64,000 nucleotides of DNA from Macrostomum lignano (taxonomy: Eukaryota): contig NIVC01001505.1 in the NCBI GenBank assembly GCA_002269645.1, positions 124,001 through 188,000 of the forward strand, in the 5' to 3' direction. The translations under genes were made by a program, and so were the position numbers. Every line of letters starts with the position of its first letter. Within the stretch, counting starts at the first letter, position 1. Shown here piece after piece: positions 12,266 to 63,762 of the stretch. The notes beneath the pieces were generated by a model. It worked only from the letters and a program-made list of their open reading frames with translations. It did not search any database and was not told the DNA's origin.

Positions 12266-12745
12266 GACTGAGGATCTGGGAGGCTGCATGGCCCAGCAAC
12301 TGAGGATCTGGGAGGCTGGCCCAGCAACTGAGGATCTGGGAGGCTGCATGGCCCAGCAACTGAGGGTCTGGGAGGCTGGCCCAGCAACTAAGGACCTGAG
12401 AGGCTGAATGGCCCAGCAACTGAGGGTCTGGGAGGCTGGCCCAGCAACTAAGGACCTGAGAGGCTGAATGGTCCAGCAACTGAGGATCTGGGAGGCTGGC
12501 CCAGCAACTAAGGACCTGAGAGGCTGAATGGCCCAGCAACTGAGGGTCTGGGAGGCTGGCCCAGCAACTAAGGACCTGAGAGGCTGAATGGCCCAGCAAC
12601 TGAGGATCTGGGAGGCTGGCCCAACAGCTGAGGATCTGGGAGGCTGGCCCAGCAACTGAGGATCTGGGAGGCAGGCCCAGCAACTGAGGATCTGGGAGGC
12701 TGGCCCAGCAACTGAGGATCTGGGAGGCTGGCCCAGCAACTGAGG
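12266..12745. repeat. ~28-bp minisatellite (actgaggatctgggaggctggcccagca)n in the NNT-MCT spacer
   Basis: Direct tandem repetition; same unit as 40340-40970. Confidence 0.95.
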
Positions 12746-29100: not shown

Positions 29101-32095
29101 GTTTGGAGGCGACTCTCAGGTAGAATTGGGGGCGATTCTCAGGTAGAATTGGGGGCGATTCTCAAGTAGAATTGGGGCCAATATAATCCGCACAGCTCTC
29201 ACCGGCAATGTTGGCCATGGAGGACAGGGCGTCGAACACCTGGGCTCGGGAGATCCTGGGCACGCAGTCCATGGCGATGACGTTGCCGCCTTTGGTCTGC
29301 AGCGCCTTGATCAGGTCCGTATTCTGTGCCGGGTACAGAAATGAAACCAGAGTGTTGCCCGGCTTCAGCAAGTCGACCTCAGAGGTTGACGGAGCCCTAA
29401 CCTTCAGCACAATGTCCGATTGGAAAGCGGCCATCTGGTCGACGATGCTGGCGCCGTTCTGTTGAAAGTCGGTGTCGAGAAATTCGGCGCCAACTCCGGC
29501 GCCTTTCTCCACGTTGATGCGAAAGCCTTTTTTAGACAGCAGCTGGCGGGCAGGGGTCAAGAAGCGACTTTTTAAGGACTGAGATGCACTTTAGGTCATA
29601 ACAAGCATTAAGATAACGCTGGTTAAACGGCGACTGCTAGAGTGATTTTGAATATGCTCTTAAGATCGATTCTCAATAAACTTTTGAAGGCCGATTTATA
29701 ATGAAGTTTTGTAGGCCGGTTCTTAATGAAGTTTTGAAGGCCGGTTCTTGATGAAGTTTTGAAGGCCGGTTCTTGATGAAGTTTTGAAGGCCGGTTCTTA
29801 ATGAAGTTTTGAAGGCCGGTTTTTTATGAAGTTTTGAAGGCCGGTTCTTAATGAAGTTTTGAAGGCCGGTTCTTAATGAAGTTTTGAAGGCCGGTTCTTA
29901 ATGAAGTTTTGAAGGCCGGTTTTTTATGAAGTTTTGAAGGCCGGTTCTTAATGAAGTTTTGAAGGCCGGTTTTTTATGAAGTTTTGAAGGCCGGTTCTTA
30001 ATGAAGTTTTGAAGGCCGGTTCTTAATGAAGTTTTGAAGGCCGGTTTTTTATGAAGTTTTGAAGGCCGGTTCTTAATGAAGTTTTGAAGGCCGGTTTTTT
30101 ATGAAGTTTTGAAGGCCGGTTCTTAATGAAGTTTTGAAGGCCGGTTCTTAATGAAGTTTTGAAGGCCGGTTCTTAATGAAGTTTTGAAGGCCGGTTCTTG
30201 ATGAAGTTTTGAAGGCCGGTTCTTAATGAAGTTTTGAAGGCCGGTTCTTGATGAAGTTTTGAAGGCCGGTTCTTAATGAAGTTTTGAAGGCCGGTTCTTG
30301 ATGAAGTTTTGAAGGCCGGTTCTTGATGAAGTTTTGAAGGCCGGTTCTTAATGAAGTTTTGAAGGCCGGTTCTTAATGAAGTTTTGAAGGCCGGTTCTTG
30401 ATGAAGTTTTGAAGGCCGGTTCTTAATGGAGTTTTGAAGGCCGGTTCTTAATGGAGTTTTGAAGGCCGGTTCTTGATGAAGTTTTGAAGGCCAGTTCTTA
30501 ATGGAGTTTTGAAGGCCGGTTCTTGATGAAGTTTTGAAGGCCGGTTCTTAATGAAGTTTTGAAGGCCGGTTCTTGATGAAGTTTTGAAGGCCGGTTCTTA
30601 ATGGAGTTTTGATGGCCGGTTCTTAATGAAGTTTTGAAGGCCGGTTCTTAATGGAGTTTTGATGGCCGGTTCTTGATGAAGCTTTGAAGGCCAGTTCTTG
30701 ATGAATTTTTGAAGGCCGGTTCTTGATGAAGTTTTGAAGGCCGGTTCTTGATGAAGTTTTGAAGGCCGGTTCTTGATGAAGTTTTGAAGGCCGGTTCTTG
30801 ATGAAGTTTTGAAGGCCGGTTCTTGATGAAGTTTTGAAGGCCGGTTTTTTATGAAGTTTTGAAGGCCGGTTCTTAATGAAGTTTTGAAGGCCGGTTCTTG
30901 ATGAAGTTTTGAAGGCCGGTTCTTAATGGAGTTTTTATGGCCGGTTCTTAATGGAGTTTTTATGGCAGATTCTTAATGGAGTTTTGATGGCCGGTTCTTA
31001 ATGGAGTTTTGAAGGCCGGTTCTTAATGGAGTTTTTATGGCAGATTCTTAATGGAGTTTTGAAGGCCGGTTCTTAATGAAGTTTTTATGGCAGGTTCTTA
31101 ATGGAGTTTTGAAGGCCGGTTTTTTATGAAGTTTTGAAGGCAGGTTCTTAATGGAGTTTTTATGGCCGGTTCTTAATGGAGTTTTTATGGCAGGTTCTTA
31201 ATGGAGTTTTGATGGCCGGTTCTTAATGGAGTTTGAGGGCCGGTTCTCAATAAGCTTTTGAAGGCCGGTTCTCAATAAACTTTTAAAGGCCAGTTCCTAA
31301 TGAAGTTTTGAAGGCCGGTTCTCAATAAACTTTTAAAGGCCAGTTCCTAATGAAGTTTTGAAGGCCGGTTATCAATAAACTTTTGAACGCCGGCTCTTAA
31401 TGAAGTTTTGAAGGCTGGTTCTCAGCAAGCCTTTAAAGACCGGTTCTTAATACACTGTTGAATGTTATTGAAGAACAATTATCAAGATTATTAACCAACT
31501 CGAACAATTTGTGTCCTTGAGCAAGACACTTAACTCTGCATTACTTTAGTTCACCCAGCTGTAAAATGGGTTCCAGCATTAGATAGGGTAATTGAGGGTG
31601 TGTGTGTCTATGTTTGCATGGACTGAACAGCCGTAAGCAGCCTTCAGATGCACCGCGCAATAGCTGCGGCTGAGCTGTCGGTTGCACATCTGGCCATTAG
31701 GGCAGGTGTTCTAACACCCATAAAAGGTGATTATTAAAACAGCACAATATTCACGGGTAATTCCTAGAAAACTGCATAAAAGAATATCGCAGATCAACGC
31801 AGAGCTAATAAAACCTGCGGCAACTCCCCACCTGGACAGCGGCGGGGCTCAGCGCCACCCGGCGCTCATTCTGCCAGGACTCCTTGGGCACGCCGATGGT
31901 CAGCTGGCTGTAGGCGATACCGCGGACCGGCTCGGCGGCTGCCTGCAGAGCGGCGTCGGCAGCGGCGGCGGGCGGCCGATGCAAAGGCGCAGACGTTGTC
32001 AGCAGGCGAAAGGTGAGCGCGCTGGCTCGAACAGCGGCGTCGGGTTTGAGTAGAGACAACATTGCTGCTGGCCACTGACCAGCAGGTTGTGCCAT
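14126..32095 (-). CDS. NNT: Mitochondrial NAD(P) transhydrogenase, ~1084 aa, domain order dI-dII-dIII
   Basis: 10 exons (minus): 31832-32095, 29203-29542, 28333-28529, 27026-27379, 26164-26490, 25163-25604, 24045-24593, 16514-16764, 14503-14845, 14126-14313. All GT-AG, 3255 nt in frame. Motifs: [104 protein letters not shown]. Start could be the Met at 32062. Confidence 0.98.
14930..15985. mobile_element. Non-autonomous foldback DNA transposon, 1056 bp, 295-bp TIRs, 8-bp TSD (hAT or P superfamily-like)
   Basis: TIR 14930-15224 is nearly identical to the reverse complement of 15691-15985; ends CAAGG...CCTTG. TSD AGTCGTAC at 14922-14929 and 15986-15993. Lies in NNT intron 8. Confidence 0.92.
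16030..16480. repeat. Degenerate ~20-bp repeat (tttgaggtcaaagtgggtca)n in NNT intron 8
   Basis: Recurrent aggtcaaa core. Confidence 0.8.
16830..17670. repeat. 21-22-bp minisatellite (gatccttcagtaggctacccc)n in NNT intron 7
   Basis: Direct tandem repetition, ending at the TA where the mariner begins. Confidence 0.95.
18794..21490 (+). pseudogene. Frameshifted, intron-containing EnSpm-like transposase
   Basis: Acidic 54/42-bp coding repeats ([18 protein letters not shown]), then [84 protein letters not shown]. These match the En/Spm transposase motif series. Apparent introns near 20489-20577 and 21041-21149. Confidence 0.8.
21928..22966 (+). CDS. Accessory ORF2 of the CACTA-like element (coiled coil, acidic linker, possible helical DNA-binding C-terminus), interrupted near 22716
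   Basis: 262-aa ORF 21928-22716 with a heptad stretch [36 protein letters not shown], followed by ORF 22724-22966 in another frame. Lies inside the element ends. Confidence 0.55.
24650..25135. repeat. 20-bp minisatellite (tcaatcaaccattctctacc)n in NNT intron 6
   Basis: Direct tandem repetition. Confidence 0.93.
25725..26128. repeat. 18-bp minisatellite (aacttcagggacactgat)n in NNT intron 5
   Basis: Direct tandem repetition. Confidence 0.93.
26600..27010. repeat. 21-bp minisatellite (attaggattctgagcaaaggg)n in NNT intron 4
   Basis: Direct tandem repetition. Confidence 0.93.
27425..28255. repeat. 21-bp minisatellite (caaactgtacaaatccccatt)n in NNT intron 3
   Basis: Direct tandem repetition. 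Confidence 0.95.
28550..29175. repeat. ~22-bp minisatellite (gggcgattctcaggtagaattg)n in NNT intron 2
   Basis: Direct tandem repetition. Confidence 0.95.
29690..31430. repeat. 25-bp minisatellite (aatgaagttttgaaggccggttctt)n in NNT intron 1
   Basis: Direct tandem repetition over ~1.7 kb. Confidence 0.97.
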
Positions 32096-38900: not shown

Positions 38901-41900
38901 GTCGAAAACAAAATTTGCATCAGACTGCATAAACTATAAATTTCACAAGCCCTAAATTTCACAAGCCATACTTTTCATAAGACCTAATTTTCACAACGTC
39001 GAAAAGTTGTGCACAGAATTTCACAAGCTCTAAAAACACTATGGAGATACAATCTTTCAGACGTGCTTTTAGACGTTGTGAAATTTAGGTCTTGTGAAAG
39101 ATTGTATCTCCATAGTGTTTTTAGGCGTTGTGAAATTTAGGTCTTGTGAAAGATTGTATCTCCATAGTGTTTTTAGGCGTTGTGAAATTTAGGTCTTGTG
39201 AAAGATTGTATCTCCATAGTGTTTTTAGGCGTTGTGAAATTTAGGTCTTGTGAAAGATTGTATCTCCATAGTGTTTTTAGGCGTTGTGAAATTTAGGTCT
39301 TGTGAAAGATTGTATCTCCATAGTGTTTTTAGGCGTTGTGAAATTTAGGGCTTGTGAAAGATTGTATCTCCATAGTGTTTTTAGGCGTTGTGAAATTTAG
39401 GGCTTGTGAAAGATTGTATCTCCATAGTGTTTTTAGGAGTTGTGAAATTTAGGTCTTGTGAAAGATTGTATCTCCATAGTGTTTTTAGGCGTTGTGAAAT
39501 TTAGGGCTTGTGAAAGATTGTATCTCCATAGTGTTTTTAGGCGTTGTGAAATTTAGGGCTTGTGAAAGATTGTATCTCCATAGTGTTTTTAGGCGTTGTG
39601 AAATTTAGGGCTTGTGAAAGATTGTATCTCCATAGTGTTTTTAGGCGTTGTGAAATTTAGGGCTTGTGAAAGATTGTATCTCCATAGTGTTTTTAGGCGT
39701 TGTGAAATTTAGGGCTTGTGAAAGATTGTATCTCCATAGTGTTTTTAGGCGTTGTGAAATTTAGGGCTTGTGAAAGATTGTATCTCCATAGTGTTTTTAG
39801 GCGTTGTGAAATTTAGGTCTTGTGAAAGATTGTATCTCCATAGTGTTTTTAGGCGTTGTGAAATTTAGGGCTTGTGAAAGATTGTATCTCCATAGTGTTT
39901 TTAGGCGTTGTGAAATTTAGAGCTTGCGAAATTTAGAGCTTCTGAAAATAGAAGCAAATTTAATTTTCGACGTTGTGATATTTAGGGTTTGTGAAATTTA
40001 GGGTTTGTGAAATTTAGAGATAGTGAAATTTAGGGCTTTTGAAATTCTGTGCATGCCTTTTAGGTGTTATGAAATTTAGGGCTTGTGAAATTTAGGTCTT
40101 GTGAAATCTGCTGCATTGCTTATTTTCGACGTTGTGAAAATAAGGGTTTATGAAATATAGGTCTTATGAAAGGTTCTGGTTTCGACGTTGTGAAAATTAG
40201 GGTTTATGAAATATAGGTCTTATGAAAGGTTCTGGCTTCGACGTTGTGAAAATTAGGGTTTGTGAAACGACCCTACAAATGCTAGTAGAGAAATATAGGA
40301 AGATTACATATTTAATTAAAGATCTATGGTTAGCTAAGACTGGCCCAGCTACTGGGGATCTGGGAGGCTGGCCCAGAAACTGAGGATCTGGGAGGCTGGC
40401 CCAGCAACTGGGGATCTGGGAGGCTGGCCCAGCAACTGAGGATCTGGGAGGCTGGCCCAGCAACTGACACTCTGGGAGGCTGGCCGAGCAACTGAGGATC
40501 TGGGAGGCTGAATGGCCCAGCAACTGAGGATCTGGGAGGCTGGCTCAGCAACTGAGGATCTGGAAGGGTGGCCCAGCAACTGAGGATCTGGGAGGCTGGC
40601 CCAGCAAATGAGGATCTGGGAGGCTGGCCCAGCAACTGAGGATCTGGGAGGCTGGCCCAGCAACTGAGGATCTGGAAGGGTGGCCCAGCAACTGAGGATC
40701 TGGGAGGCTGGCCCAGCAACTGAGGATCTGGAAGGGTGGCCCAGCAACTGAGGATCTGGGAGGCTGACTGATCTGGGAGGCTGGCCCAGCAACTGAGGAT
40801 CTGGGAGGCTGGCCCAGCAACTGAGGATCTGGGAGGCTGGCCTAGCAACTGAGGACCTGGGAGGCTGGCTCAGCAACTGAGGATCTGGGAGGCTGGCTCA
40901 GCAACTGAGGATCTGGGAGGCTGGCTCAGCAACTGAGGATCTGGAAGGGTGGCCCAGCAACTGAGGATCTCCATGAGGGAGGATCTCCCATCACTCACCT
41001 CGGTAGAGTCCGAACACGCCCTCGAAGCGGATGACCTTCTTGAAGCAGTCCCAGGAGTTGCGGTACAGCACCTCGCCAACCGTGGAGGTGCGCTGGTTTT
41101 GCATCCGGGTCTTCACCAGATCGATGGGATACACGGCCGTGGCTCCGATGGCGCCCGCGATGGCGCCCAGCGAGAAGCGGTACACCTGCTCCAGTATGGA
41201 CAGCAGGAATGTCCGGCCGCGGCCCTCAGCCCGGGTCTCCACAGCGTCCTGCACCCGGCGGGCGGCGGTGTCCGGGGCGTACTTGCTGGTGTACTCATCG
41301 AATGGCGCCATCCGCTTCACGTCGTAGTAGGAGATGCAGTCGTCTTCGCGAAGAAACTTGGCGAGTTGGAACAGGATGTCCACCTCCAGCGGAGTGAGCT
41401 GATTGTAGCTCATGGCATCGTTGGTGAGCTCCTCGCGAGTGACCGGGGCGTGTACATCGTTGCCAGTGCGGGCTTGGATAAGTTTCTTCAATAGCTCCAT
41501 GTTGTTGAGCAGCGAGATGAACGCATTGAAATAGGAGAAGCTGATGTGGCTGCCGTGCTCGGCGCCGAACACCACCTAAAACGATTGTGGGGTGGGTGAG
41601 GACTTGGGTGTAGTTGGGTGGGGTGTACATGGGTTTTTGTGAGACCGAGTGTATTCTGGAGTGCGTGGGGAGTGTACGTTGGGGTAAATAGGGGGGTGTA
41701 TATTAGGTGAATAGATGGGTGTACATTGGAGTGGATAGGGGGAGTGTACATTGGGGTGGAAAGGGGGAGTGTAAATTGGGGTGGATAGGAGGGAATGTAC
41801 ATTGGGGTGGATAGGAGGGAATGTACATTGGGGTGAATATGAGGAGGGTTATTAGGGTGGATAGGGGGAGTGTACATTGGGGCGGATAGGAGGGAATGTA

Positions 41901-44900
41901 CATTGGGGTGGATAGGGGTGTGTACATTGGGGTGGATAGGGGCTGTGTACATTGGGGTGGATAGGGGGAGTGTAAATTGGGGTGTATAGGAGGGAATGTA
42001 CATTGGGGTGGATAGGAGGGAATGTACATTGGGGTGGATATGAGGAGTGTACATTAGGGTGGATATGAGGAGTGTACATTAGGGTGGATAGGGGGAGTGT
42101 ACATTAGGGTGGATAGGGGGAGTGTACATTGGGGAGTGTACATTGGGATTATGTAGTGATGAAAGATGGAGAAAAGTTACTAAGAAGTCGCAACAAACCC
42201 CAGAGATCTCAATTCACCTGCATGAGATGGTCGCGCAGGAACGGAGTCAGCAGATTGGATTTCAGCTGCACCATAATGTTGACAAAGTCCATAGCGCGAA
42301 TTTTGCCCTCGTTGCGTTTGTCGCTGCGTTGAAAAGCTTGCAAAGCGTGCTCTTCGTGAAAGTCCTGGATAGTTTACGCGTTGTGTCCATTAAGTCTAAT
42401 GCTAAAAGATATTGTTGTAACTTTATAAATATACATAGCCTCGATAAGAAATACTCACGTGGATGAGCTGGGTGAACTCCTCATAACTGACAATCTGATC
42501 GCGAGCTTTTCCAAAGTGCAAATCAATAAAATCGCAATCGAAATTAAACGGATATTGCCGATGCAGCGTGGTGACCGTGATGACCGATTTGAATTCGGCT
42601 GAAAGTATTTTTGTTAAAAATGTGTTTTATGTACTTCTTACAAGTATTTTTAGTTAAAGCAGGAAGTAACCTGGAGAGAGGGGACAATCTAAGGTAAGGG
42701 CGGACAGCAACTTGAAGAGGCAGACAGCAACCTGAAGAAGGGGCAGACAGCAACCTGAGGAAGGGGCAGACAGCAACCTGAGGAAGGGGCAGACAGCAAC
42801 CTGAGGAAGGGGCAGACAGCGACCTGAGGAAGGGACGGACAGCAACCTGAGGAAGGGGCAGACAGCAACCTGAGGAAGGGGCGGACAGCAACCTGAGGAA
42901 GGGGCGGACAGCAACCTGAGGAAGGGGCAGACAGCAACCTGAGGAAGGGGCAGACAGCAACCTGAGGAAGGGGCAGACAGCGACCTGAGGAAGGGACGGA
43001 CAGCAACCTGAGGAAGGGGCAGACAGCAACCTGAGGAAGGGGCAGACAGCGACCTGAGGAAGGGACGGACAGCAACCTGAGGAAGGGGCAGACAGCAACC
43101 TGAGGAAGGGGCAGACAGCAACCTGAGGAAGGGACGGACAGCAACCTGAGGAAGGGACGGACAGCAACCTGAGGTAGGGGCGGACAGCAACCTGAGGTAG
43201 GGGCGGACAGCAACCTGAGGTAGGGGCGGACATCAACCTGAGGTAGGGGCGGACATCAACCTGAGGTAGGGGCGGACAGCAACCTGAGGTAGGGGCGGAC
43301 AGCAACCTGAGGTAGGGGCGGACAGCAAGCTGAGGAAGGGGCGGACAGCAACCTGAGGAAGGGGCGGACAGCAACCTGAGGAAGGGGCAGACAGCAACCT
43401 GAGGAAGGGACGGACAGCAACCTGAGGTAGGGGCGGACAGCAACCTGAGGTAGGGGCGGACAGCAACCTGAGGTAGGGGCGGACAGCAACCTGAGGTAGG
43501 GGCGGACATCAACCTGAGGTAGGGGCGGACAGCAACCTGAGGTAGGGGCGGACAGCAACCTGAGGTAGGGGCGGACAGCAAGCTGAGGAAGGGGCGGACA
43601 GCAACCTGAGGAAGGGGCAGACAGCAACCTGAGGAAGGGGCAGACAGCAACCTGAGGAAGGGACGGACAGCAACCTGAGGTAGGGGCGGACAGCAACCTG
43701 AGGTAGGGGCGGACAGCAACCTGAGGTAGGGGCGGACAGCAACCTGAGGTAGGGGCAGACAGCAACCTGAGGTAGGGGCGGACAGCAACCTGAGGTAGGG
43801 GCGGACAGCAACCTGAGGTAGGGGCGGACAGCAAGCTGAGGTAGGGGCGGACAGCAAGCATGCGAATCTCAAACAAAACACTAACAGAAAGAGACGTATC
43901 CATTGCCGTTAACATCGAACAGATCGAATGCAATTCTGTATGCGTGATCGGGCAAGGAAAGCAAGCCTTCGAATGTTTCGAACTCTTCGAAGCTGATTAA
44001 GCCGTCTTTGTCGTAGTCTGCGATGGTGCCAAGCTGTTTGACGGTGTCCTCGTTGGCATTCTCGAAACAGTAGAGGCCAAGAAACTTCTGTACGAAGTCC
44101 GGATAGGTCATGTACAGGGAGCCGCTCTTGTGCACGCTGGCGAACTGTAAGGCATGGGAGGGCGATTCTTAATGCGATTCTTGAGCGACAGCTGAGGGCA
44201 GATTCTGACAAGATTCTCACCGACAGCTGAGGGCAGATTCTGACAAGATTCTCACCGACAGCTGAGGGCAGATTCTGACAAGATTCTCACCGACAGCTGA
44301 GGGCAGATTCTGACAAGATTCTCACCGACAGCTGAGGGCAGATTCTGACAAGATTCTTGAGGGACAGCTGAGGGCAGATTCTGACAAGATTCTCACCGAC
44401 AGCTGAGGGCAGATTCTGACAAGATTCTCACCGACAGCTGAGGGCAGATTCTGACAAGATTCTCACCGACAGCTGAGGGCAGATTCTGACAAGATTCTTG
44501 AGGGACAGCTGAGGGCAGATTCTGACAAGATTCTCAGGGACAGCTGAAGGCAGATTCTGACAAGATTCTTGAGGGACAGCTGAGGGCAGATTCTGACAAT
44601 ATCCTCAGGGGCAGATTCTGACAAGATTCTCATGGACAGCTGAGGGCAGATTCTGACAAGATTCTCACCGACAGCTGAGGGCAGATTCTGACAAGATTCT
44701 CAGGGACAGCTGAAGGCAGATTCTGACAAGATTCTCAGGGACAGCTGAGCGCAGATTCTGACAAGATCCTCAGGGGCAGATTCTGACAAGATTCTCATGG
44801 ACAGCTGAGGGCAGATTCTGACAAGATTCTCACCGACAGCTGAGGGCAGATTCTGACAAGATTCTCAGGGACAGCTGAAGGCAGATTCTGACAAGATTCT

Positions 44901-51925: not shown

Positions 51926-54900
51926 ATGTCGTTACCAGTAACATTGCATCGGCAACTACCTACAGTAAAGAAACTACTGCTACAAACTCAGCCTTGGAGA
52001 CCAGGTAGTAGCGCTGTGGCTTCCTTAGCAACCAACAAAGAGCAGCGTCAGCATCGCTTGTCAGTCTTCTTAGCCGAGCAAGAGCGTCAGAGAAGTGCCA
52101 AGACTGCGACAACTGAGGCTGCTATTGAAGTATCCACGGCTGAAAAGTTGTCAAAGTCGGTCTCTTTGAAGTTGAACGCCGCGTCAACGCCTTTGGATGT
52201 TGCCAAGCAGTTGGATGAGGCTGCTCAGGATGGAGGCGGTGGTAACTTAGTGCGCGACTCGGCCCTGGCAGTTGTTGACGAGCAGTACTATTGGAGTATG
52301 CGCAGGCCGCTGAAAAAGTCCTGCCTTCTGAGATTTATTCCACTGATGAGGGGCAGCCCAGCTAGTCGGCAAGAGGCTGTTGGTGGGTTCATGAGCAGTG
52401 TGTTTAATAATAACATACATTAGTCCGCTGACCTCTGAGCAGACGGCATCGTTGAATTCAGCCCTTTGAAAATGTTACCGTGACAAGAATCGCTAGAGTC
52501 ATTGCAAATAACCCACTGGTGAATCTATAGTGACTCTTGTGACTTTTTAACGACTCAAGCAATTGTAATGCGGCGTAGAGACGACTGTTAAGTCAAGAGT
52601 GCATCGCGTGATTTGTAGAATCGTAAAAGACTCACGAAAAAGTCGTCCAAGAGTCTTGTTAGTGCTTAAACTTTCTACTAACTCGAGTAGACTAAATAGA
52701 GTTGTCATAAATGTAAATGCGATTGAAATTCATTAAGTTACACAGATGCACTTTAGACACGCCTTATGTACAACTCTCTGATGCCACTGGGTCGTTTCAG
52801 AGTCACAGACGATAAAATGCGTCAAATTGACTTTTAGGCAACTTATTGGTGACATCTGACGTGACATCTCGTTGTTTTAGAGACGTCTAAAAACGTTTTA
52901 GAGTCACTTCTCCTTTTTACCGGTTACCTGCAACGACTCTGGTACGCTTCTTGGCCTAGGTACCGGTAATATAGGGGCCGCAGAGAGTAAAGCAGCGCGG
53001 TTGGTAGGCATAGCCACTTGGGCAAAATTAAGCCGAGCTGCAGTCGTTTAGCACTTGTGCACCCTGATATCCTGGCATCCTCCCTTTCTAAACCGAACAG
53101 ACATGAAAGCGGGTAACAACGCCCTGTGGCGCTCCGGAGCAATGCTACTCGGCTCCGTGTTCGAGACCGCATTCAAGGAGGAGTACAGAGTGCAACTCGT
53201 TAGCAGTCCGCCACCTCACTTCTCAACTGGAAGCTTTGTGTACGACTGTCGGGTTAGTACACCTTGAGCATGTCCGTATTCGATGGTGGGACACTTTGAG
53301 CATGCCAATATTCGATGATGTGACACTTTGAGCATGTCAATATTCGATGATGTGACACTTTGAGCATGCCAATATTCGATTATGTGACACTTTGAGCATG
53401 CCAATATTCGATTATGTGACACTTTGAGCATGCCAATATTCGATTATGTGACACTTTAAGCATGCCAATATTCGATTATGTGACACTTTGAGCATGCCAA
53501 TATTCGATTATGTGACACTTTGAGCATGTCAATATTCGATGATGTGACTGACACTTTGAGCATGTCAATATTCGATGATGTGACACTTTAAGCATGTCAA
53601 TATTCGATGATGTGACACTTTAAGCATGTCAATATTCGATGGTGTGACACTTTGAGCATCTCAATATTCCATGGTGTGACACTTTGAGCATTTCAGTATT
53701 CGATGATGTGACACTTTGAGCATGTCAGTATTCGATAATGTGACACTTTGAGCATGTCAGTATTCGATGATGTGACACTTTGAGCATGTCAGTATTCGAT
53801 GGTGTGACACTTTGAGCATGTCAATATTCGATGATGTGACACTTTGAGCATGTCAATATTCGATGATGTGACACTTTGAGCATGCCAATATTCGATGATG
53901 TGACACTTTGAGCATGCCAATATTCGATGATGTGACACTTTGAGCATGCCAATATTCGATGATGTGACACTTTGAGCATGTCAATATTCGATGATGTGAC
54001 TGACACTTTGAGCATGTCAATATTCGATGGTGTGACACTTTGAGCATCTCAATATTCCATGGTGTGACACTTTGAGCATTTCAGTATTCGATGATGTGAC
54101 ACTTTGAGCATGTCATTATTCGATAATGTGACACTTTGAGCATGCCAATATTCGATGATGTGACACTTTGAGCATGTCAATATTCGATGATGTGACTGAC
54201 ACTTTGAGCATGTCAATATTCGATAATGTGACACTTTGAGCATGTCAGTATTCGATGATGTGACACTTTGAGCATGTCAATATTCCATGGTGTGACACTT
54301 TGAGCATGTCAATATTCGATGATGTGACACTTTGGACATGTCAATATTCGATGATGTGACACTTTGAGCATGTCAGTATTCGATGATGTGACACTTTGAG
54401 CATGTCAATATTCAGTGATGTGACACTTTGAGCATGTCAATATTCGATGATGTGACACTTTGAGCATGTCAGTATTCGATGATGTGACACTTTGAGCATG
54501 TCAGTATTCGATGGTGTGACACTTTGAGGATGTCAGTATTCGATGGTGTGACACTTTGAGGATGTCAGTATTCGATGATGTGACACTTTGAGCATGTCAG
54601 TATTCGATGATGTGACACTTTGAGCATGTCAATATTCAGTGATGTGACACTTTGAGCATGTCAATATTCGATAATGTGACACTTTTAGCATGTCAGTATT
54701 CGATGATGTGACACTTTGAGCATGTCAATATTCGATGATGTGACTGACACTTTGAGCATGTCAATATTCGATGATGTGACACTTTGAGCATGCCAATATT
54801 CGATGATGTGACACTTTGAGCATGTCAATATTCCATGGTGTGACACTTTGAGCATGTCAATATTCGATGATGTGACACTTTGGACATGTCAGTATTCGAT

Positions 54901-56935
54901 GATGTGACACTTTGAGCATGTCAGTATTCGATGATGTGACACTTTGAGCATGTCAATATTCAGTGATGTGACACTTTGAGCATGTCAATATTCGATGATG
55001 TGACACTTTGAGCATGTCAGTATTCGATGGTGTGACACTTTGAGGATGTCAGTATTCGATGGTGTGACACTTTGAGGATGTCAGTATTCGATGATGTGAC
55101 ACTTTGAGCATGTCAGTATTCGATGATGTGACACTTTGAGCATGTCAATATTCAGTGATGTGACACTTTGAGCATGTCAATATTCGATGATGTGACACTT
55201 TTAGCATGTCAGTATTCGATGGTGTGACACTGAGCATGTCAGTATTCGATGGTGTGACACTTTGAGGATGTCAGTATTCGATGGTGTGACACTTTGAGGA
55301 TGTCAGTATTCGATGGTGTGACACTTTGAGGATGTCAGTATTCGATGGTGTGACACTTTGAGGATGTCAGTATTCGATGGTGTGACACTTTGAGCATGTC
55401 AGTATTCGATGATGTGACACTTTTAGCATGTCAATATTCAATATGTGACACTTTGAGCATGTCAATATTCAGTGATGTGACACTTTGAGCATGTCAATAT
55501 TCAGTGATGTGACACTTTGAGCATGTCAGTATTCAATGATGTGACACTTTGAGCATGTCAGTATTCGATTGTGTGACACTTTGAGCATGTCAGTATTCGA
55601 TGATGTGACACTTTGAGCATCTCAAACAAGGGATTAACTATGTAACAACCCCTACCCGGCCTGCTCAGGTAACAAAGGACCAAGCCCTGCAGCACAGCGT
55701 ACTGCAGCTCACTGGCGGTCACTGCCTCTCCGCCTGGGCGCCGAGTCGCGCCGAACTGCGCGCCCTGAGCCGCGCCGCCCTGCCGCTGCTGTCAGCGGAT
55801 GCGCCGTTCGAATGGCTGGAGCTGCCGCTGCCTGTCGCCCTTGACATGTTCAAGCACAATCCGTTCAAGCTGGCCGCCGCCAAGAGGGCCGCCAGCGCTT
55901 CCGCTGGTGGGTTTTTAAATTCTCTGCTGTTGTGCGATATGGGAGACTTTCCATCGATTGGGATTTCTGAGCGATGTCCCCCAATGAACTATTTAGCCAT
56001 TTTAAGCGATCCCTCATTTATCCTTTGCTAATCTGAGCAGTTCCCCATTGAGTAATTAGCAGTTTGAGCAGTTCCCCATTGAGTAATTAGCAGTTTGAGC
56101 AGTTCCCCATTGAGTAATTAGCAGTTTGAGCAGTTCCCCATTGAGTAATTAACAGTTTGAGCAGTTCCCCATTGAGTAACTAACAGTTTGAGCAGTTCCC
56201 CATTGAGTAATTAACAGTTTGAGCAATTCCCCATTGAGTAATTATCAGTTTAAGCAGTTCCCCATTGAGTAATTAGCAGTTTGAGCAGTTCCCCATTGAG
56301 TAATTAACAGTTTGAGCAGTTCCCCATTGAGTAATTAACAGTTTGAGCAATTCCCCATTGAGTAATTATCAGTTTAAGCAGTTCCCCATTGAGTAATTAG
56401 CAGTTTGAGCAGTTCCCCATTGAGTAATTAACAGTTTGAGCAGTTCCCCATTGAGTAATTATCAGTTTGAGCAATTCCCCATTGAGTAATTAGCAGTTTG
56501 AGCAGTTCCCCATTGAGTAATTATCAGTTTGAGTAATTTGCATGCATGCTCCATCCAAACTCTTGTCTTTCTGCAGCTGCCGCTCACTCGGTCAGCGGAC
56601 CCCAGCGTCAGCAGCAGCCAGCAGCCTCAGTCGCGGTGTACAAAGTCGGCGACTTCGTAGACCTGCTTGGCCAAGGACCCCTTCTGAGTCGCACTGGCCA
56701 GATCGCCAGCCTGCTGTTCGCGGCTGTGCACCGGATTGAGTCTGCAGATTATGGCAGCCTTGCTCGGGTGCAGGGCATCGCCACTGCCGCCGGCATGTCG
56801 CCAGCTGAGGTGGCCGACTGGGCTGATGCCGCTTTGGAGAAGGCGTCCGAGCTCAACTCCACCTTCCCGCCGTCTGAGCAGCCGCAGATTGGGGCAGCGG
56901 CTTCGAAACCTGCTGCTGCTGCTGCTGCGCGTTGA
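51926..56935 (+). CDS. MRPL39: Mitochondrial ribosomal protein mL39 (ThrRS TGS/editing-domain-like), ~401 aa
   Basis: Exons 51926-52382, 53101-53252, 55669-55906, 56577-56935; 1206 nt in frame. Motifs STPLDVAKQL, YWSMRRPLKKSC.LRF, ALWRSGAMLLGSVFETAFKEEYRVQLV, GSFVYD, PFEWLEL..VALDMFKHNPFK, VYKVGDFVDL..GPL match MRPL39 as I recall it. Confidence 0.88.
53270..55620. repeat. ~32-bp minisatellite (gatgtgacactttgagcatgtcaatattcgat)n, ~2.3 kb, MRPL39 intron 2
   Basis: Direct tandem repetition filling almost the entire intron. Confidence 0.97.
56030..56535. repeat. 31-bp minisatellite (ttgagcagttccccattgagtaattagcagt)n, MRPL39 intron 3
   Basis: Direct tandem repetition. Confidence 0.95.
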
Positions 56936-57970: not shown

Positions 57971-59384
57971 TAGTAATAGATCTAATCTGTAATTCAAGCT
58001 AAGCAACTACAAATCTTTGTGCATTTTTGATATTTAGTGTGCACCAGTTTTCATTATTAATGCTAAATGCGTGTTTTGTTTGAAAATAAATAAATAATTA
58101 TTCACGAAAACGTCAGCCAATCGGTTTCTGACAAATTCTCAGAAAAAAAACTGACAAAAGCAACGGCACTGGATGGTCCTTAGGGTGCTTCTTCAAATTC
58201 CAAACTGACAGCTGTTACAGTCTGCACTTGACTAAAAATGAGGCTCTGGCCATATTTTCACAGTGCGCTCTGTTCCAGAACTTTTTAAGGCAAACATTTC
58301 TGTTCTACTGCTGTCCATGAACAGTATTGTTTGAGAAAACACGGACAATAGAGAGCACTGTTGAAATAATTTCGTTCATTAATCAGAATCCTCATGATTT
58401 TTGATATTCAGCTAACGCTTTTCTTGTTCAAAGTTCTCATAAATTTGTCTACACAAGTTAGTTGCGTCTCTGACGAACGAACTAAGACTTGATTATGGCG
58501 GGCTGCTCGTACACAGTCATAAAGTAAGAACCACCGCAGATCTGCTTTTGATTGCCAGGACACTTGTAATCACATAATATTGTGAACTGACTTTACGTCC
58601 AATTGCTTCCTGATCTTTGCAGTGGCATTCTGTTCGATCTAACCCAAAAGTAGCGAGTAGTAGTGACACTGCAGTCCTTCTGGCATCAGAAAGCGAACTG
58701 CTCATGGTCGGTGTACCCAAGGATGAAGCAGTGCACAATATTTATATCATTTGTGTGTTGAGGTTGATGGCACAGGTGGTGCGCAGAGTCTACTCAGACT
58801 CAGATGCTCAGATTAACTCAAAAGATCGAGAGCAGCCTGACGCTCCAGTGCAGCCTGGCCCGTCGTTTGCCTGTCGGACTTGTGGAATTCAAGAGCATCT
58901 TGAGTGAGCTGCGTTATTTCTAAGAGGGTTGGAGGTTCGTACTCTATTGTCTTCTTAGGGACGGGTCGAGATCTTCCGTACAGAGTTAGAAGTGGATCCG
59001 GCCAGAGGACTGCTGAAGGTGCCTTGAGCTCTCGTGCTCTGACGCTCATTGGGTTAATTTAGGAGTGAGTAAGATCGGTTTCTGTCATTGTCCCAACATC
59101 AGTGCGAATTTACCGAATATTCAAAAAGTTGGAATAAAGCTTTTGCACTTTAAATACCCCGACAGAAATGAGGTGGGGTGGGGCAGGCCGGCAGCGGGGT
59201 TGGTCAATATCACAAATATTGACTGTCTTAGCGGTTCAGCAATCACTTGAAGTACATAAAGCAGACAATTAAAATTGTTTACGCTGGTACTTTATATCAT
59301 TTAGCTAGTGAAAAAAAGCAGTTGAGCGCCAATACGGTGAAATGCGCAATCACCGTCGCGGGACCCGAAAACCTGTAGCTGTAG

Positions 59385-59870
59385 CTGGCTGTAGCTTAGC
59401 TGTACCTGGCTGTAGCTTGGCTGTAGATTGTAACTTTGGCTGTAGATTGGCTGTAGCTTGTAGTTTTCGATGTAGCTTGGCTGTAGCTTGGCTGTAGCTT
59501 GGCTGTAGCTTGGCTGTAGCTTGGCTGTAGCTTGGCTTTAGCTTGGCTGTAGCTTGCTCTAGCTTGGCTGTAGCTGGCTGTAGCTTAGCTGTAGCTTGGC
59601 TGTAGTTTGCTGTAGCTTGGCTGTAGCTAGTTGTAGCTTGGCTGTAGCTTATCTGTACCTGACTGTACCTGACTGTAGCTTGGCTGTAGATTGGCTGTAG
59701 CTTGCTGTAGGATGTTGTAGCTTGGCTGTACCTGACTGTAGCTTGGCTGTACCTGACTGTAGCTTGGCTGTACCTGACTGTAGCTTGGCTGTACCTGGCT
59801 GTAGCTTGGCTGTACCTGGCTGTAGCTAGGCTGTACCTGGCTATTGCTCGGCTGTAGCTTGGCTGTACAT
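59385..59870. repeat. 10-bp minisatellite (gctgtagctt)n
   Basis: Direct tandem repetition. Confidence 0.93.
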
Positions 59871-60480
59871 TACATCACTTTTCAGTTTTCCAAGTTTATC
59901 CAACAATGAGAAGAACAGTTACGGTTTTCAACAAATACGCAATCATCGCCCAGTTGGAGGTTCAAAAATTCGTTTCCACAAAAGCTCAAAAATAAATTAG
60001 CAATTTTTCGTCTTTTAATTAATTAAAAGAATTAAACAGCTAGCAGATGTGTAGAGACAAACACCTGCAATTTTTATTCAATCTTTTTTTTCGTATTCGA
60101 TACAGGACGCTCGTAGTGTGATATGCACGGAAACAGAAATTCTATCTGAAGCCGGAAATTGTTATTAAAGACATCTTCAAGGGCAGAAGTAGAGCTGTCT
60201 TGATGTCTTGATTTTTCCTAATTTAGACATGTACACTCGTAATTTCGTTGTTAGTATATTTAAAATATTTATCTACTCAAAATTAGTGACTCAGAGTTTT
60301 GTGCAATCAATTTAATTTTTTTTAAATCTAAAATCTACATAAGCATTGTGGGACCTGCATGTACCGGCATAAGTTGAGATTACAGGCGGAGCAATGGATT
60401 TTCAGTCTGTTCTCCAAGCAATTCGTTGAATTAAAAAAATACATGAATCATGTACGATGTTTAGACAGTCAAGTGTGGAG

Positions 60481-61110
60481 TCAGCACTGCTCAGCGTGAG
60501 CAGCCAGCCGACCGCTCATCAGCCTCACGAAGTTGATGCGGAACCGATCGCCCCACGAGTTCTCCAGCATCAGCAGCGGCAGCTGCAGGGACGACTCGTC
60601 GCCTCCCTTGACGGTTGACGCCGGCAGCTCGACAACTCCGAGGACGTCGACTCGAGTCACCCTCGGGTCCGACACGACGTCGCCGAGCGGACGGCCGGAC
60701 GACGGCTCGACGGAGTCGTCGCGGAGCACCGGCTTCCAGCAGTCGAAAGTCAAGTCTCCGTCAGCGGCTCCGAGAACGATCCAGCCGACCGGACCGAGGG
60801 CCAGTCCGCCTGCTGTGGCAGCCCCGGCTGCGCCAGCTGCACTCGAGGACACGCCGGCAGCGCCAGCGCCTCCCACAGCGGCCCCTACGGCCGCTCCTTC
60901 AAGAGTTCCAGCAGCGGCAGCGCCTGTCAGCGCACCGCTCGCAATGCCAGCAGCCGTGCTTCCTGCGGTGGAAGCTGCAGCTGACGCCCCTGCAACTGAC
61001 GCACCTGCTCCGATTCCTCCGCTAGCAGTGGCCGCACCGGCTCCAGCTGCCGCAGCGGCGCCACCTGTGGCAACGATGGCTCCGACAGCAACGGCAGTGG
61101 CAGCCACCAT
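60481..61110 (-). CDS. Uncharacterised Gly/Ala-rich hydrophobic protein with FDCWKP domain, copy A (209 aa from this Met)
   Basis: Intact GC-rich ORF; three paralogs nearby share GP.GW...FDCWKP..RD.S.EPS.GR.L.D...DPR...N.WG..F....L...R.AAHAE. Splice acceptor at 61127-61129 suggests a further N-terminal exon. Confidence 0.75.
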   Translation of the reverse strand: MVAATAVAVGAIVATGGAAAAAGAGAATASGGIGAGASVAGASAAASTAGSTAAGIASGALTGAAAAGTLEGAAVGAAVGGAGAAGVSSSAAGAAGAATAGGLALGPVGWIVLGAADGDLTFDCWKPVLRDDSVEPSSGRPLGDVVSDPRVTRVDVLGVVELPASTVKGGDESSLQLPLLMLENSWGDRFRINFVRLMSGRLAAHAEQC

Positions 61111-61332
61111 GGTTAAACCCGCTTGGCTGCAATTGTAGAAGATTAAACCTACTTATATCTCAGGTTAGATCCAGAACTGATGCCTAACTGAAAATCCAAT
61201 ACAATGGGCCTGGTTGAGTAATAAAAATGAGCCAACAAAGACAGCCCAATTAAAGTATTAAGTCGATGTATAATTTAAATTGAAGCGGACCAAACCGTCC
61301 CACAGCAAAATGGCTCAGCAAGTGTCTGAAAG

Positions 61333-61899
61333 TCACTCCAGCAACGGCTCGGCGTGCGCCGCCACCCGACTGCCAGGCAGCTCGATGAGTCGCAGGCCGA
61401 ACGCCTCGCCCCAGACGTTGCGCAGGCGGATCTGCGGCGACGCTCCGACAGCCCTGACGGCCACCTCGGCGATCCTCGGGTCGGCGGCGAGGTCCCGCAG
61501 CAGCCGGCCGGCTGACGGCTCGGCCGAGAGGTCGCGCACCAGCGGCTTCCAACAGTCGAAGCTGACTGAACCTGCGGCGGCTGCGGCGGTGTCGGTCGAG
61601 CAGCCGACCAGCAACCAACCGAGCGGGCCCGACATCAGCGCCGGCGATGCCACCGCCCAGGAGGCCGGCAGCGACGCCGCGCCGCCCGCCACCGCCGACG
61701 AGACGTCGCCTCCGATGGCCGCTCCGAGGATGGCCGCAGCCGAGGCGGCCCCGGCCGCTGCGCCGGCGGCTCCGGCGGCTCCCGAGCCGGCCAGCTGCGC
61801 CCCGGCGCCCAGACCGGCGCCCGTCGCCAGTCCCACCAGGGCCGCGCTGGCCGCTCCCGAGGTGAGCCAGGCTCCGCTGAGTGCTCCGATGATCAGCAT
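61333..61899 (-). CDS. Uncharacterised Gly/Ala-rich hydrophobic protein with FDCWKP domain, copy B (188 aa from this Met)
   Basis: Intact ORF, diverged from A but keeping GPLGWLLVG, SFDCWKPLVRD, EPSAGRLLRD, DPRI, NVWGEAF, AAHAE. Branch point and acceptor (ctgacctgcag) just upstream. Confidence 0.72.
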   Translation of the reverse strand: MLIIGALSGAWLTSGAASAALVGLATGAGLGAGAQLAGSGAAGAAGAAAGAASAAAILGAAIGGDVSSAVAGGAASLPASWAVASPALMSGPLGWLLVGCSTDTAAAAAGSVSFDCWKPLVRDLSAEPSAGRLLRDLAADPRIAEVAVRAVGASPQIRLRNVWGEAFGLRLIELPGSRVAAHAEPLLE

Positions 61900-62266
61900 G
61901 CTGCTGCAGGTCAGTTTGTGCTCTGCTTGCTTCTTGATTCTTTATGGGCTGAGAAGTCTTGCAAAATTGTCCGTCCGGCAGCCTCGTATTTATGCTGTCT
62001 CTGGTTCCTTGTAAGTCCAAAACAGGTCAATAAAAGCCCTCAATGGGCTCCCATTGTGCTTTTGTTGCAAAACGAAAAATGGAAAATGAAAATTGCTGCT
62101 TAGCTTGTACTTCGCAGAGCAACAGGTACAACCGTGTTATTCTGGCAATTGTTCTTATTGTTAGATAATCGAAAATTGAAAACTGAAAAATGGTGCACAA
62201 TGTAGTAGCCTAGTGAGTTGAAGAGTTTTTCCGCCAGGTTTCACAACTTACAAAAAGGCAGTGGCG

Positions 62267-62947
62267 ATGCTGAATGACCTACAAGGAACAACTGGCAGCA
62301 GCAGCAGCATAAATAGGGCAGAGTGAGTTGAAAATTTCTTTCAAGACAGCTTCAGAGCTTCCAGAAAAGGATTTAAAGTTCTTCAGCCAAGCTACAGCCA
62401 TGGTTCTCGGCACTGCTGCTGCCATCGGAGCGGTTGTCGCCACGGGTGGCGCCGCGGCCCGATCGCTGGTGGAGCGGCGTCGGCCGCCTCTGGAATCGCT
62501 GGCGGCGCTGCGACTGGCGCGGCCGCTGCCGGCGCGGCTGAGGGAGCGGCCATCGGGGCGGCTCTGGGAGGCGCTGGGGCTGCAGGGGCGTCTTCCACAG
62601 CGGCTGGCGCAGCCGCCACAACAGTGGCCCTCGGTCCCGTCGGCTGGATTGTTCTCGGAGCCGCTGACGGAGACTTGACTTTCGACTGCTGGAAGCCGGT
62701 GCTCCGCGACGACTCCGTCGAGCCGTCGTCCGGCCGTCCGCTCGGCGACGTCGTGTCGGACCCGAGGGTGACTCGAGTCGACGTCCTCGGAGTTGTCGAG
62801 CTGCCGGCGTCAACCTTCAAGGCAGGCGACGAGTCGTCCCTGCGGCTGCCGCTGCTGATGCTGGAGAACTCGTGGGGCGATCGGTTCCGCATCGACTTCG
62901 TGAGGCTGAGGAGCGGTCGGCTGGCTGCTCACGCTGAGCAGTGCTGA
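62267..62947 (+). pseudogene. FDCWKP-family copy C, with a frameshift in the Gly/Ala region
   Basis: Exon 62267-62322 (MLNDLQGTTGSSSSINRA), 64-nt GT-AG intron 62323-62386, then QATAMVLGTAAAIGAVVATGGAAA. The frame shifts near 62460; the C-terminal ~105 aa are near-identical to copy A. Could be an assembly indel. Confidence 0.65.
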
Positions 62948-63479
62948 CTGATACGCATCTGACCGCTCAGTGATGATTGCTGGTGTTTCATAGGCAACTT
63001 TTTAGTCGTATTGTTTGATTACAAATTTATTCCTTAATTGGTTTGCGCTTTACTCGTAAGAAGTTGAACATTTTCTAATGAATAAATCAGTAGCCGATCA
63101 AACATTTTAGACTAGAATTTTTTCTCATTTGGTTTCACTTTATCCATTTGAGCTTTGAACACTTCCAGAGACAACCACTCCGTGTCAATTAGTCCAATGT
63201 CTAAATTTGAGCATGATGAGTCGTAAAGTGTCTCTGAAACACCAGCATCGATTCCATCTGGCAACTTTGCAGGCTCGAAACTTGACTTCCCCAGTTTCAA
63301 CGGCAGAGAATTTGATTAACTTACAAACTATTACGGCAATGAAAAATTGTGGATCCGCCACATTCATTAAAGACAAGATAGATAGATAAGTGCAATGCAT
63401 ATATTTAACTTGGGTTCGTCTCGCTTATTGCATCATTTCACGCGAACAATTTTGCTATGAATACTTAAGCGACAGGTAA

Positions 63480-63762
63480 GCAATATGAGACAACACATTA
63501 GCCTACGAGCCTGAAATGTATCTCCATCGGACTGATCAAACAAGCAGGCATGCAAGGCGCTTAAACCCCGAACGGATATCTTTAAAAGAGGCTTAATCAT
63601 ATTGAAAATGATGCAAAAATGACTTTTGGCATTGCAGTCAACACAGCCGGTGGTTCGGACGACGGCTCCACGTCCGGAATCGTTGCGGAGCACCGGCTTC
63701 CAGCAGTCGAAGGTCATGCCATCATCGTTGCTCAAATAGTTGTTCTCAGCGCCGATTGGCAT
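63480..63762 (-). pseudogene. Degenerate FDCWKP-family fragment, copy D
   Basis: GMTFDCWKPVLRNDS, then a 4-nt insertion (ggac) relative to copies A and C before gtggagccgtcgtcc. No Gly/Ala region visible immediately upstream. Confidence 0.6.

Follow-up and report, generated by a model that had tools for sequence, protein, structure and literature searches.

A cluster of four related stretches, here named copies A to D, was found within 3.3 kb near the end of a 64,000-nucleotide (nt) stretch of the free-living flatworm Macrostomum lignano (the window; contig NIVC01001505.1, positions 124,001 to 188,000, of the Mlig_3_7 assembly, GCA_002269645.1), and belongs to a protein family that is real, unnamed and undescribed. 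The proteins combine a long N-terminal tract of small residues (the N-region), in which the glycines show zipper-like spacing, with a conserved C-terminal domain that, as judged by sequence and predicted fold, lies outside every family with which it was compared (Pfam, NCBIfam, PDB and BFVD). We read the family as conserved endogenous proteins that self-associate at the membrane and carry a thiol-based C-terminal domain, and not as secreted toxins, a reading to which we give an even chance. An earlier prediction, made from the letters of the window (the original prediction), had singled out the cluster as its best candidate for an undescribed system. The family is indeed undescribed, a defence system is not what emerged, and the novelty is that of a new family and domain and not of a new biological system.

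Exactly four related stretches were recovered in the window from the table of open reading frames (ORFs) and by tblastn with A and B, at the places and on the strands claimed earlier and, for A, B and D, in the state of preservation claimed; the same tblastn comparison, which covered the window and the 9 kb past its end, revealed no fifth copy. Copy A (60481-61110, minus strand) is an intact ATG-to-stop ORF of 209 residues, in which residues 1-104 (60799-61110) form the N-region and residues 105-209 (60484-60798; hidden Markov model (HMM) E=1.5e-31) the C-terminal domain, followed by the stop codon at 60481-60483. Copy B (61333-61899, minus strand) is likewise intact and encodes 188 residues, divided into an N-region (61630-61899) and a domain (61336-61629). 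Copy C runs on the plus strand from its ATG at 62401 to its stop at 62947 with one change of frame near 62457, and was detected by tblastn as two segments in different frames; its domain (62633-62944) lies within the ORF 62624-62947, the stop codon being 62945-62947. Copy D (63640-63726, minus strand) is a relic of about 29 codons that holds the start of the domain only (MTFDCWKPVLRNDSG). It showed 55% identity over 29 residues in tblastn, its HMM match is limited to positions 14-40, it includes a 42-nt repeat that is 93% identical to A and C, and its homologous stretch sits within a chance ORF (63433-63762, minus strand). Overall, A and B are 43% identical, and even at this distance they have the motifs FDCWKP, EPS.GR.L.D, DPR, N.WG..F and AAHAE in common, as had been noticed before. 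An insert of 15 residues between two strands of the domain is present in A and C but not in B. The possibility that the copies are themselves chance ORFs in GC-rich low-complexity DNA was rejected because of their conservation; the overlapping antisense ORFs (e.g. 60533-61138, plus, and 61250-62020, minus) are artefacts of this GC-rich, low-complexity coding DNA.

An exhaustive HMM search of 1.84 billion representative proteins with a profile of the C-terminal domain yielded 376 clusters, counted at 50% identity, at E<=1e-3, with 279 at E<=1e-10 and 39 at E<=1e-30. Copy A as the sole query gave 36 relatives, and a word-indexed search with the C-terminal profile (alignment A2) gave 156. All members in the 376 clusters have a length of 90-250 residues with the domain at the C-terminus, longer matches to the profile being merged gene predictions. 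The named hosts are exclusively protostomes, of at least five phyla, at 35-50% identity. They include rotifers (three species of Rotaria, and Adineta), molluscs (Biomphalaria glabrata, B. pfeifferi, Mytilus and Mercenaria), arthropods (four Daphnia species and one fly, Bradysia) and nematodes (Toxocara and Panagrolaimus), the spread being patchy within nematodes and insects, and each genome contains few copies (2-4). Among named sequences the family is absent from vertebrates, fungi, plants and bacteria, and a motif-seeded scan, in which an exact DCWK or GPVGW was needed and which divergent relatives could escape, was negative both for 185,579 prokaryotic species genomes and for IMG/VR. In line with the earlier description of the family as unrecognised, neither A-D nor 38 aligned members matched Pfam at E<=1, NCBIfam returned noise only, and the family profile had no match at E<=10 among all PDB sequences; a match to a housekeeping family was not found in these comparisons. 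The gene and LOC identifiers, the motif strings, and 'fibroin heavy chain-like' in combination with Daphnia were not found in any paper.

The names that members carry in the databases contradict each other ('FAM71B', 'GARIN3-like', 'fibroin heavy chain-like', 'GPI-anchored protein 23') and no domain match stands behind any of them; such inconsistency is typical of low-complexity best matches. Two of these names, 'protein FAM71B' in Biomphalaria and 'Golgi-associated RAB2B interactor protein 3-like' in Mytilus, would make the family orthologous to the vertebrate Golgi RAB2B interactor FAM71B/GARIN3. However, the very proteins that carry them match no Pfam family, GARIN domains included, even at E<=10, and the names of close paralogues are mutually inconsistent, so that we consider the probability of this orthology close to negligible.

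Counted from the hinge GP(V/I)GWxxLG onwards, the C-terminal part of the protein is tightly kept at 90-104 residues throughout the family. AlphaFold modelled it with confidence, both for the domain by itself (predicted local distance difference test (pLDDT) 84.8, predicted template modelling (pTM) score 0.75) and within full-length copy A (domain pLDDT ~90), as a small hairpin, a helix of five residues, another short helix and an antiparallel sheet of four strands. In 214 domains the Cys of DCWK, the Asn of N.W.E.F and the His of AHA are 100% invariant, and D122, W124, K125, S136, G138, G113 and A205 are conserved in at least 97%; the Asp before the invariant Cys reaches 98.6%, and Thr or Ser occupies position -3. 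According to the model the Cys (Cys25) is the N-cap residue immediately before helix 26-30, and the His (His106) is located in the last strand (103-109). Foldseek searches with the full-length and domain models against PDB, and with the domain against BFVD, gave nothing below E=0.26, with template modelling (TM) scores <=0.34, so the confident model has no relative in either collection.

The N-region measures 43-133 residues across the family (mode 90-105) and 80-105 residues in M. lignano, and begins with the consensus MV..T...V..(V/I)ATGGAA.P. It consists mainly of Ala (33%), Gly (19%), Thr (12%), Val (12%) and Ser (8%); the median number of charged residues is one, and the grand average of hydropathy (GRAVY) is 1.18. 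Where a Gly/Ala/Ser tract with zipper-like spacing had been proposed, the composition is better described as Ala/Gly/Thr/Val/Ser-rich, and the spacing of the small residues holds. In 112 N-regions compared with 200 within-sequence shuffles, the Gly-Gly autocorrelation has its maxima at lags 4 (z=+12) and 8 (z=+8), whereas lags 1-3 are depleted; the z-values are inflated because the sequences are related. The GxxxG spacing exceeds the expectation from composition and the zipper is real. The Kyte-Doolittle maximum over 19 residues (1.7-2.1) is found at the N-terminus, and by these values the tract is transmembrane-like in its first ~20 residues only. The hydrophobic stretch begins at residue 2 with no charged n-region ahead of it, and a classical signal peptide is not evident; together with the single, unpaired invariant Cys, this would suit a domain located in the cytoplasm more than one that is secreted.

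We infer the following arrangement from these features. The first module would be the nearly charge-free Ala/Gly/Thr/Val/Ser tract, which starts at the first Met and would form helices of small residues; by packing together in or on the membrane, these helices would let the protein oligomerise. The second would be the compact alpha/beta domain of ~95 residues, from the hinge to the end, in which the invariant Cys, Asn and His are expected to make up a thiol-based site, facing the cytoplasm, for catalysis or the binding of a ligand. The clustered paralogues possibly act as homo- or hetero-oligomers, with gene conversion keeping the domains of A and C alike and D being a dead fragment.

Several observations weigh against this arrangement. 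The summed insertion free energy is marginal for the first 19-residue window (+1 to +3 kcal/mol) and unfavourable for the central part of the N-region (+4 to +7 kcal/mol), both being simple sums over the values of a translocon insertion scale that reportedly stems from Hessa et al. 2005. The N-region has an AlphaFold pLDDT below 50, its period-4 spacing could partly stem from 12-nt slippage repeats, and the proteins might conceivably be secreted. The order Cys...Asn...His and the lack of a Foldseek match give no support for a known thiol-enzyme fold. Finally, copy A is without a gene model in the databases searched, and the dN/dS ratio (omega, nonsynonymous to synonymous divergence) is ~0.6 between A and B and ~1, on seven differences, between A and C, so that constraint on the flatworm copies is weaker than the average for the family.

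The low pLDDT and the unfavourable insertion energy would also suit a soluble, low-complexity structural or phase-separating protein, comparable to silks, elastomers or stress protectants, with an Ala/Gly tract that is disordered or forms amyloid. One source names a Daphnia member 'fibroin heavy chain-like', and desiccation-tolerant rotifers and Panagrolaimus are among the hosts. The glycine period of 4 instead of 2, on the other hand, points to helices rather than to beta-silk, the virtually uncharged N-region should by itself be insoluble, and the tract is of limited length and gives way to a conserved hinge and a globular domain. We regard a soluble protein of this type as quite unlikely.

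Small clusters of two or three paralogues are the normal state of the family in other phyla. Three members are located within 19 kb, in mixed orientation, in Biomphalaria glabrata, a tandem pair with 1.45 kb between its genes is present in Daphnia pulex, and two or three copies lie ~0.85-1.1 kb apart at 11 of 21 metagenome loci and at two further loci (L005 and L013). For tandem neighbours of other taxa with unsaturated dS, omega of the domain is 0.11-0.37, which indicates that these paralogues are under purifying selection, and the family-wide dN/dS is below 1. The flatworm pair A-B was less informative: its domain gave a dN of 0.45 and a dS of 0.72, and the resulting omega is of limited value, with dS ranging from 0.7 to above 2, near saturation, at a GC content of third codon positions (GC3) of 0.83-0.88.

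These values bear directly on the earlier proposal of pore-forming, effector or toxin proteins under birth-and-death evolution, in which the glycine-zipper half would be a membrane-inserting pore and the copies would turn over in a host-pathogen conflict. The GxxxG spacing is genuine, and glycine zippers are said to have been described in channel- and pore-forming helices by Kim et al. 2005 in PNAS. Small, inverted and partly decayed clusters, in the flatworm as well as in other taxa, the A-B omega of ~0.6, and a homologue carried by a giant virus (see below) would all agree with such a function. Yet the proteins retain 35-50% identity and an invariant Cys/Asn/His across phyla, omega is low in the other tandem pairs, there are just 2-4 copies per genome, and no structural or sequence match to a pore-former or toxin was obtained in PDB or BFVD. 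In addition, the hydrophobicity of the N-region is too weak on the insertion scale, the missing charged n-region leaves a classical signal peptide without evidence, the invariant Cys is single, and the break in copy C is possibly an assembly error. Each specific prediction of the toxin or defence reading that was testable here failed or came out neutral; it is unsupported, and we deem it unlikely.

The cluster arose by local duplication and one inversion, as was originally proposed. The domains of A and C form an inverted repeat of 325 nt with 98% identity, which begins with the LALGPVGW codons and ends 2 nt after the stop codon. Its arms are located at 60479-60803 (A domain plus these 2 nt) and at 62625-62949 (C domain). 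Outside this tract the 3' flanks are unalignable and only ~35 nt of acceptor and 5'-untranslated region before the ATG are alike, whereas the N-regions are ~75% identical with several indels, the net indel length between C and A not being a multiple of three. Identity that is confined to the domain is the signature of gene conversion, by which the two domains were homogenised. The seven differences within the tract (five nonsynonymous, two synonymous) equal the neutral expectation.

The whole locus recurs in the M. lignano assembly, each copy adjoining a gene that encodes a Rel-homology domain, and the comparison sheds light on copy C. At locus L010 (NIVC01000109.1) A, B and D are identical to those in the window and C is intact. 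Over the 3.3-kb cluster the two loci are 99.9% identical and differ by one substitution and two one-base indels, which are single-base deletions in the window at 62457 and 63127, while the flanks differ by 9-20 substitutions per kb. The deletion at 62457 is the frame break of C and constitutes the only coding difference in that copy. A pattern of single-base deletions is typical of long-read consensus errors and, because the break is absent from a locus that is 99.9% identical, what looks like decay of C may be due to an error in the assembly, or else to a very recent lesion. Of the earlier statement that C is frameshifted, the one-base break stands; most of the supposed decay comes down to this base, which is present at L010. 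Locus L011, 21.5 kb from L010, contains an intact C and B-like fragments, and locus L037 (NIVC01000475.1) contains the same four elements plus an extra fragment, with C broken at another place and with one residue change and a two-Ala indel in copy B; the lesions of C thus differ from one duplicate locus to another. The published assembly holds 180 Mb of duplicated blocks that are at least 95% identical (PMC5730564).

The neighbouring Rel-homology-domain gene (NF-kB/NFAT-type) directly adjoins the D fragment, ~0.7 kb past the end of the window (L001, 12377-17476), and was duplicated along with the cluster, which it accompanies at each of the four loci (also L010, 12387-18018; L011, 13280-19723; L037, 1931-7118). 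This linkage may merely reflect segmental duplication.

Gene models exist for two of the copies. The protein of copy C (P0254), intact at L010 and L011, corresponds to PAA90474.1/PAA90476.1 (BOX15_Mlig005449g1), and a called product of C is recorded for NIVC01001505.1 (276,480 bp) as well; the protein of copy B is called as a gene at L010, and the GenBank protein PAA82373.1 (BOX15_Mlig026522g2) is at least 90% identical to it. Since the GenBank annotation was built from a genome-guided RNA sequencing (RNA-seq) transcriptome, with gene borders cut at trans-splice and poly(A) sites (PMC5730564), the transcript-derived B-like and C models imply that B and C are transcribed somewhere in the genome. 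Mlig005449 was not found in the supplements of the M. lignano papers searched, nor Mlig026522 in one such supplement, and this search yielded no expression data by tissue or condition. Among the closest relatives, two Logan contigs have a genomic rather than a transcript-derived appearance and so give no evidence on expression.

The sequences between the copies suggest how they might be transcribed. A and C have a strong start context (ACCATGG and GCCATGG, respectively), and an AG acceptor-like 'cag' precedes the ATG by 4-16 nt in each of A, B and C ('ttgcag' 16 nt upstream in A, 'ctgcag' 4 nt upstream in B). The 222-bp spacer that separates the stop codon of B from the start codon of A (61111-61332, minus strand) terminates in this 'ttgcag'. 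Polycistronic precursors that are cut by trans-splicing are known in M. lignano (PMC5730564), and in view of this and of the spacer sequence B and A may form a single precursor transcript that is resolved by trans-splicing. The suffix 'g2' in the name of the B-like GenBank gene fits a multi-gene transcriptional unit. The divergent genes B and C are separated by 501 bp (61900-62400; GC 0.43), a putative shared promoter region.

Beyond the animals, a homologue with the full architecture (P0036, 233 residues) is encoded at 1589-2290 of a 12.9-kb metagenome contig (L002, JGI Ga0392329_0001439). With its 30% GC, its dense intron-free ORFs, and genes for a minor capsid protein P8 of the nucleocytoplasmic large DNA viruses (NCLDV; E=7e-35), a type IIA topoisomerase, an HMG box protein, a thioredoxin and a glycosyltransferase, this is a giant-virus contig. 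The P0036 gene is also present on two more short contigs. A divergent homologue was observed at 128-844 of a compact marine contig with 59% GC and dense intron-free ORFs (L032, JGI Ga0163180_10005957), which further carries a TBP-like gene and an ORFan of 868 residues and derives from either a virus or a picoeukaryote; this member hints that the family may extend past animals. In a neighbour-joining tree, which is weak as it rests on 100 columns only, the sequences group by taxon and the viral homologue forms the outermost and longest branch, which argues for old vertical inheritance with losses over recent transfer.

That the genes are mobile or foreign, either as transposon cargo or as a recent horizontal acquisition with a giant virus or bacterium as the donor, might be concluded from the high GC content of the coding DNA (0.67-0.79, with a GC3 of 0.82-0.88) versus that of the flanks (0.33-0.43), from the homologue on the NCLDV-type contig, and from the patchy spread. 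In three rotifer assemblies an integrase-core (rve) gene was moreover observed 2.3 kb upstream of the rotifer member (the integrase gene being at 4113-5720 of L007, Rotaria socialis; also L008 and L009). Against such an origin, neither terminal repeats nor a transposase were found around the cluster, where only unrelated minisatellites and the coding inverted repeat of A and C occur, and no transposable-element domain was found in the nearby ORFs. The motif scan of prokaryotic genomes and IMG/VR was negative, as described above, and the viral sequence branches outside animal sequences that group by taxon. The rotifer member spans 685 nt for 194 residues and thus contains an intron, introns or larger gene spans being found in the rotifer and Daphnia genes, and the whole locus has been duplicated together with its Rel-homology neighbour as ordinary host DNA. 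We consider a mobile or foreign gene highly improbable. Transposon cargo, recent horizontal transfer, orthology to GARIN3 and artefact are each contradicted by direct tests.

The conserved Asp-Cys pair allows for yet another function, that of a self-processing precursor in which the Asp-Cys bond would be cut by an N-to-S acyl shift, aided by His and Asn as in Hint- or Ntn-like proteins, and a glycine-zipper peptide of ~120 residues would be set free. The invariance of Cys, His and Asn, the near-invariance of the Asp before the Cys, the Thr/Ser at -3, and the position of the Cys at the very start of the folded core are in line with this proposal. It was, however, derived purely from residue identity; the domain has no likeness to Hint, Ntn or other self-cleaving folds, and the GPVGWxxLG hinge that precedes the Cys is a conserved element too, which the model places within the domain. 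We judge self-processing very improbable. Only slightly better, and still decidedly improbable, are the prospects of a broader and bolder formulation, according to which the family is a two-part protein class of protostomes and at least one giant virus, whose Cys/His/Asn mini-fold is either a membrane-tethered thiol enzyme or an Asp-Cys self-cleaver that frees a membrane-active glycine-zipper peptide. The self-cleaving alternative, if true, would represent a new self-activating pore or channel precursor.

Should the preferred reading of an endogenous, membrane-associated protein with a thiol-based domain hold, the family would provide a new protein domain of ~95 residues, with an unmatched predicted fold and an invariant Cys/Asn/His, and a new way in which a domain of this kind is coupled to an extended glycine-zipper tract. 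Its members occur widely among invertebrates of fresh water, soil and sea, one host being Biomphalaria, the snail vector of schistosomes; the family is wholly unstudied and goes under misleading names. The recurring clusters of two or three genes and the gene conversion hint at paralogues that act together. With the transgenesis and RNA interference available in M. lignano, the function is directly testable.

The remainder of the window is dominated by repeats. Over 40 different minisatellite arrays make up a mosaic across positions 3700-59900; they have periods between 10 and 60 nt, are 0.3-2.4 kb long, and in many cases show a strong G/C strand skew. Examples are the arrays at 29670-31451 (25 nt x71), 53259-55625 (32 nt x74) and 42698-43857 (23 nt x51). 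This fits the share of 15% that simple and tandem repeats have in the M. lignano genome (PMC5730564). Every ORF of more than 150 residues outside the cluster lies in or beside such arrays, as a read-through, and has no credible Pfam domain. An ORF at 9145-9906 (minus strand) over the GGTTGGGTA array has a sub-threshold match to the Pfam 'LED repeat' (40 bits versus a cut-off of 59), which was taken as a repeat artefact. A 28-nt unit, CTGGCCCAGCAACTGAGGATCTGGGAGG, is found in two arrays 28 kb apart (12267-12745 and 40340-40970) and a related core, GATTCTCAGG, recurs in further arrays (13588, 28562 and 44187). The minisatellites thus seem to belong to dispersed families and not to have expanded independently. 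Some 0.6 kb past the 3' end of copy A there is an 11/21-nt satellite (GCTGTAGCTTG; 59378-59867), which has no relation to the genes.

Compared with known systems, the nearest structural neighbours of the domain are a designed protein (9ded), the NTF2-like proteins 3ecf and 1zo2, and a PAS-like domain (7yrt). The likeness is that of a generic alpha+beta fold with short helices on a four-stranded antiparallel sheet, and the matches are at noise level (E >= 0.6, probability <= 0.18, TM-score <= 0.34).

With papain-like, transglutaminase-like and NlpC/P60 enzymes the modelled domain would share a Cys at the N-terminus of a helix that is followed by Trp ('CW'), a His on a beta-strand and an 'NxW' motif, and as in the LRAT/PLAAT acyltransferases a tiny Cys/His domain is joined to a hydrophobic anchor. 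The order of residues in thiol enzymes is Cys-His-Asn/Asp, versus Cys-Asn-His here, the helix here has only five residues and the domain ~85-95, and the anchor of PLAAT-type enzymes is C-terminal, whereas the hydrophobic tract here is N-terminal. The thiol enzymes have no Foldseek, Pfam or PDB sequence similarity to the family, and papain-like structures are absent from the Foldseek matches; the resemblance would be an analogy in logic only.

The ISG12 proteins (IFI6-IFI27; PF06140) are small Gly/Ala-rich hydrophobic animal proteins encoded in tandem gene clusters. A resemblance lies in the small size, the lack of an evident signal peptide, the uncharged Gly/Ala helices and the local clusters of paralogues. 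PF06140 gave no match at E<=1 to A-D or the 38 members, and ISG12 proteins are without the C-terminal Cys/Asn/His domain and are best known from vertebrates, whereas the family described here is protostome-only among named matches. The bacterial Gly-zipper families (PF05433 and relatives) likewise gave no Pfam or NCBIfam match.

Finally, glycine zippers occur in the channel-lining helices of MscL and KcsA, in the N-terminal segment of H. pylori VacA and as the oligomerisation motif of Mic10. Transmembrane segments of this type ((G/A/S)xxxGxxxG) have glycines with a period of 4 on small-residue helices, as is the case here, and the expected effect is tight helix-helix packing and oligomerisation. 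They represent a motif class and not a homologous family and, unlike these classical zipper helices, the tract in the present proteins extends over 43-133 residues, is far less hydrophobic, and is fused to a conserved globular domain.

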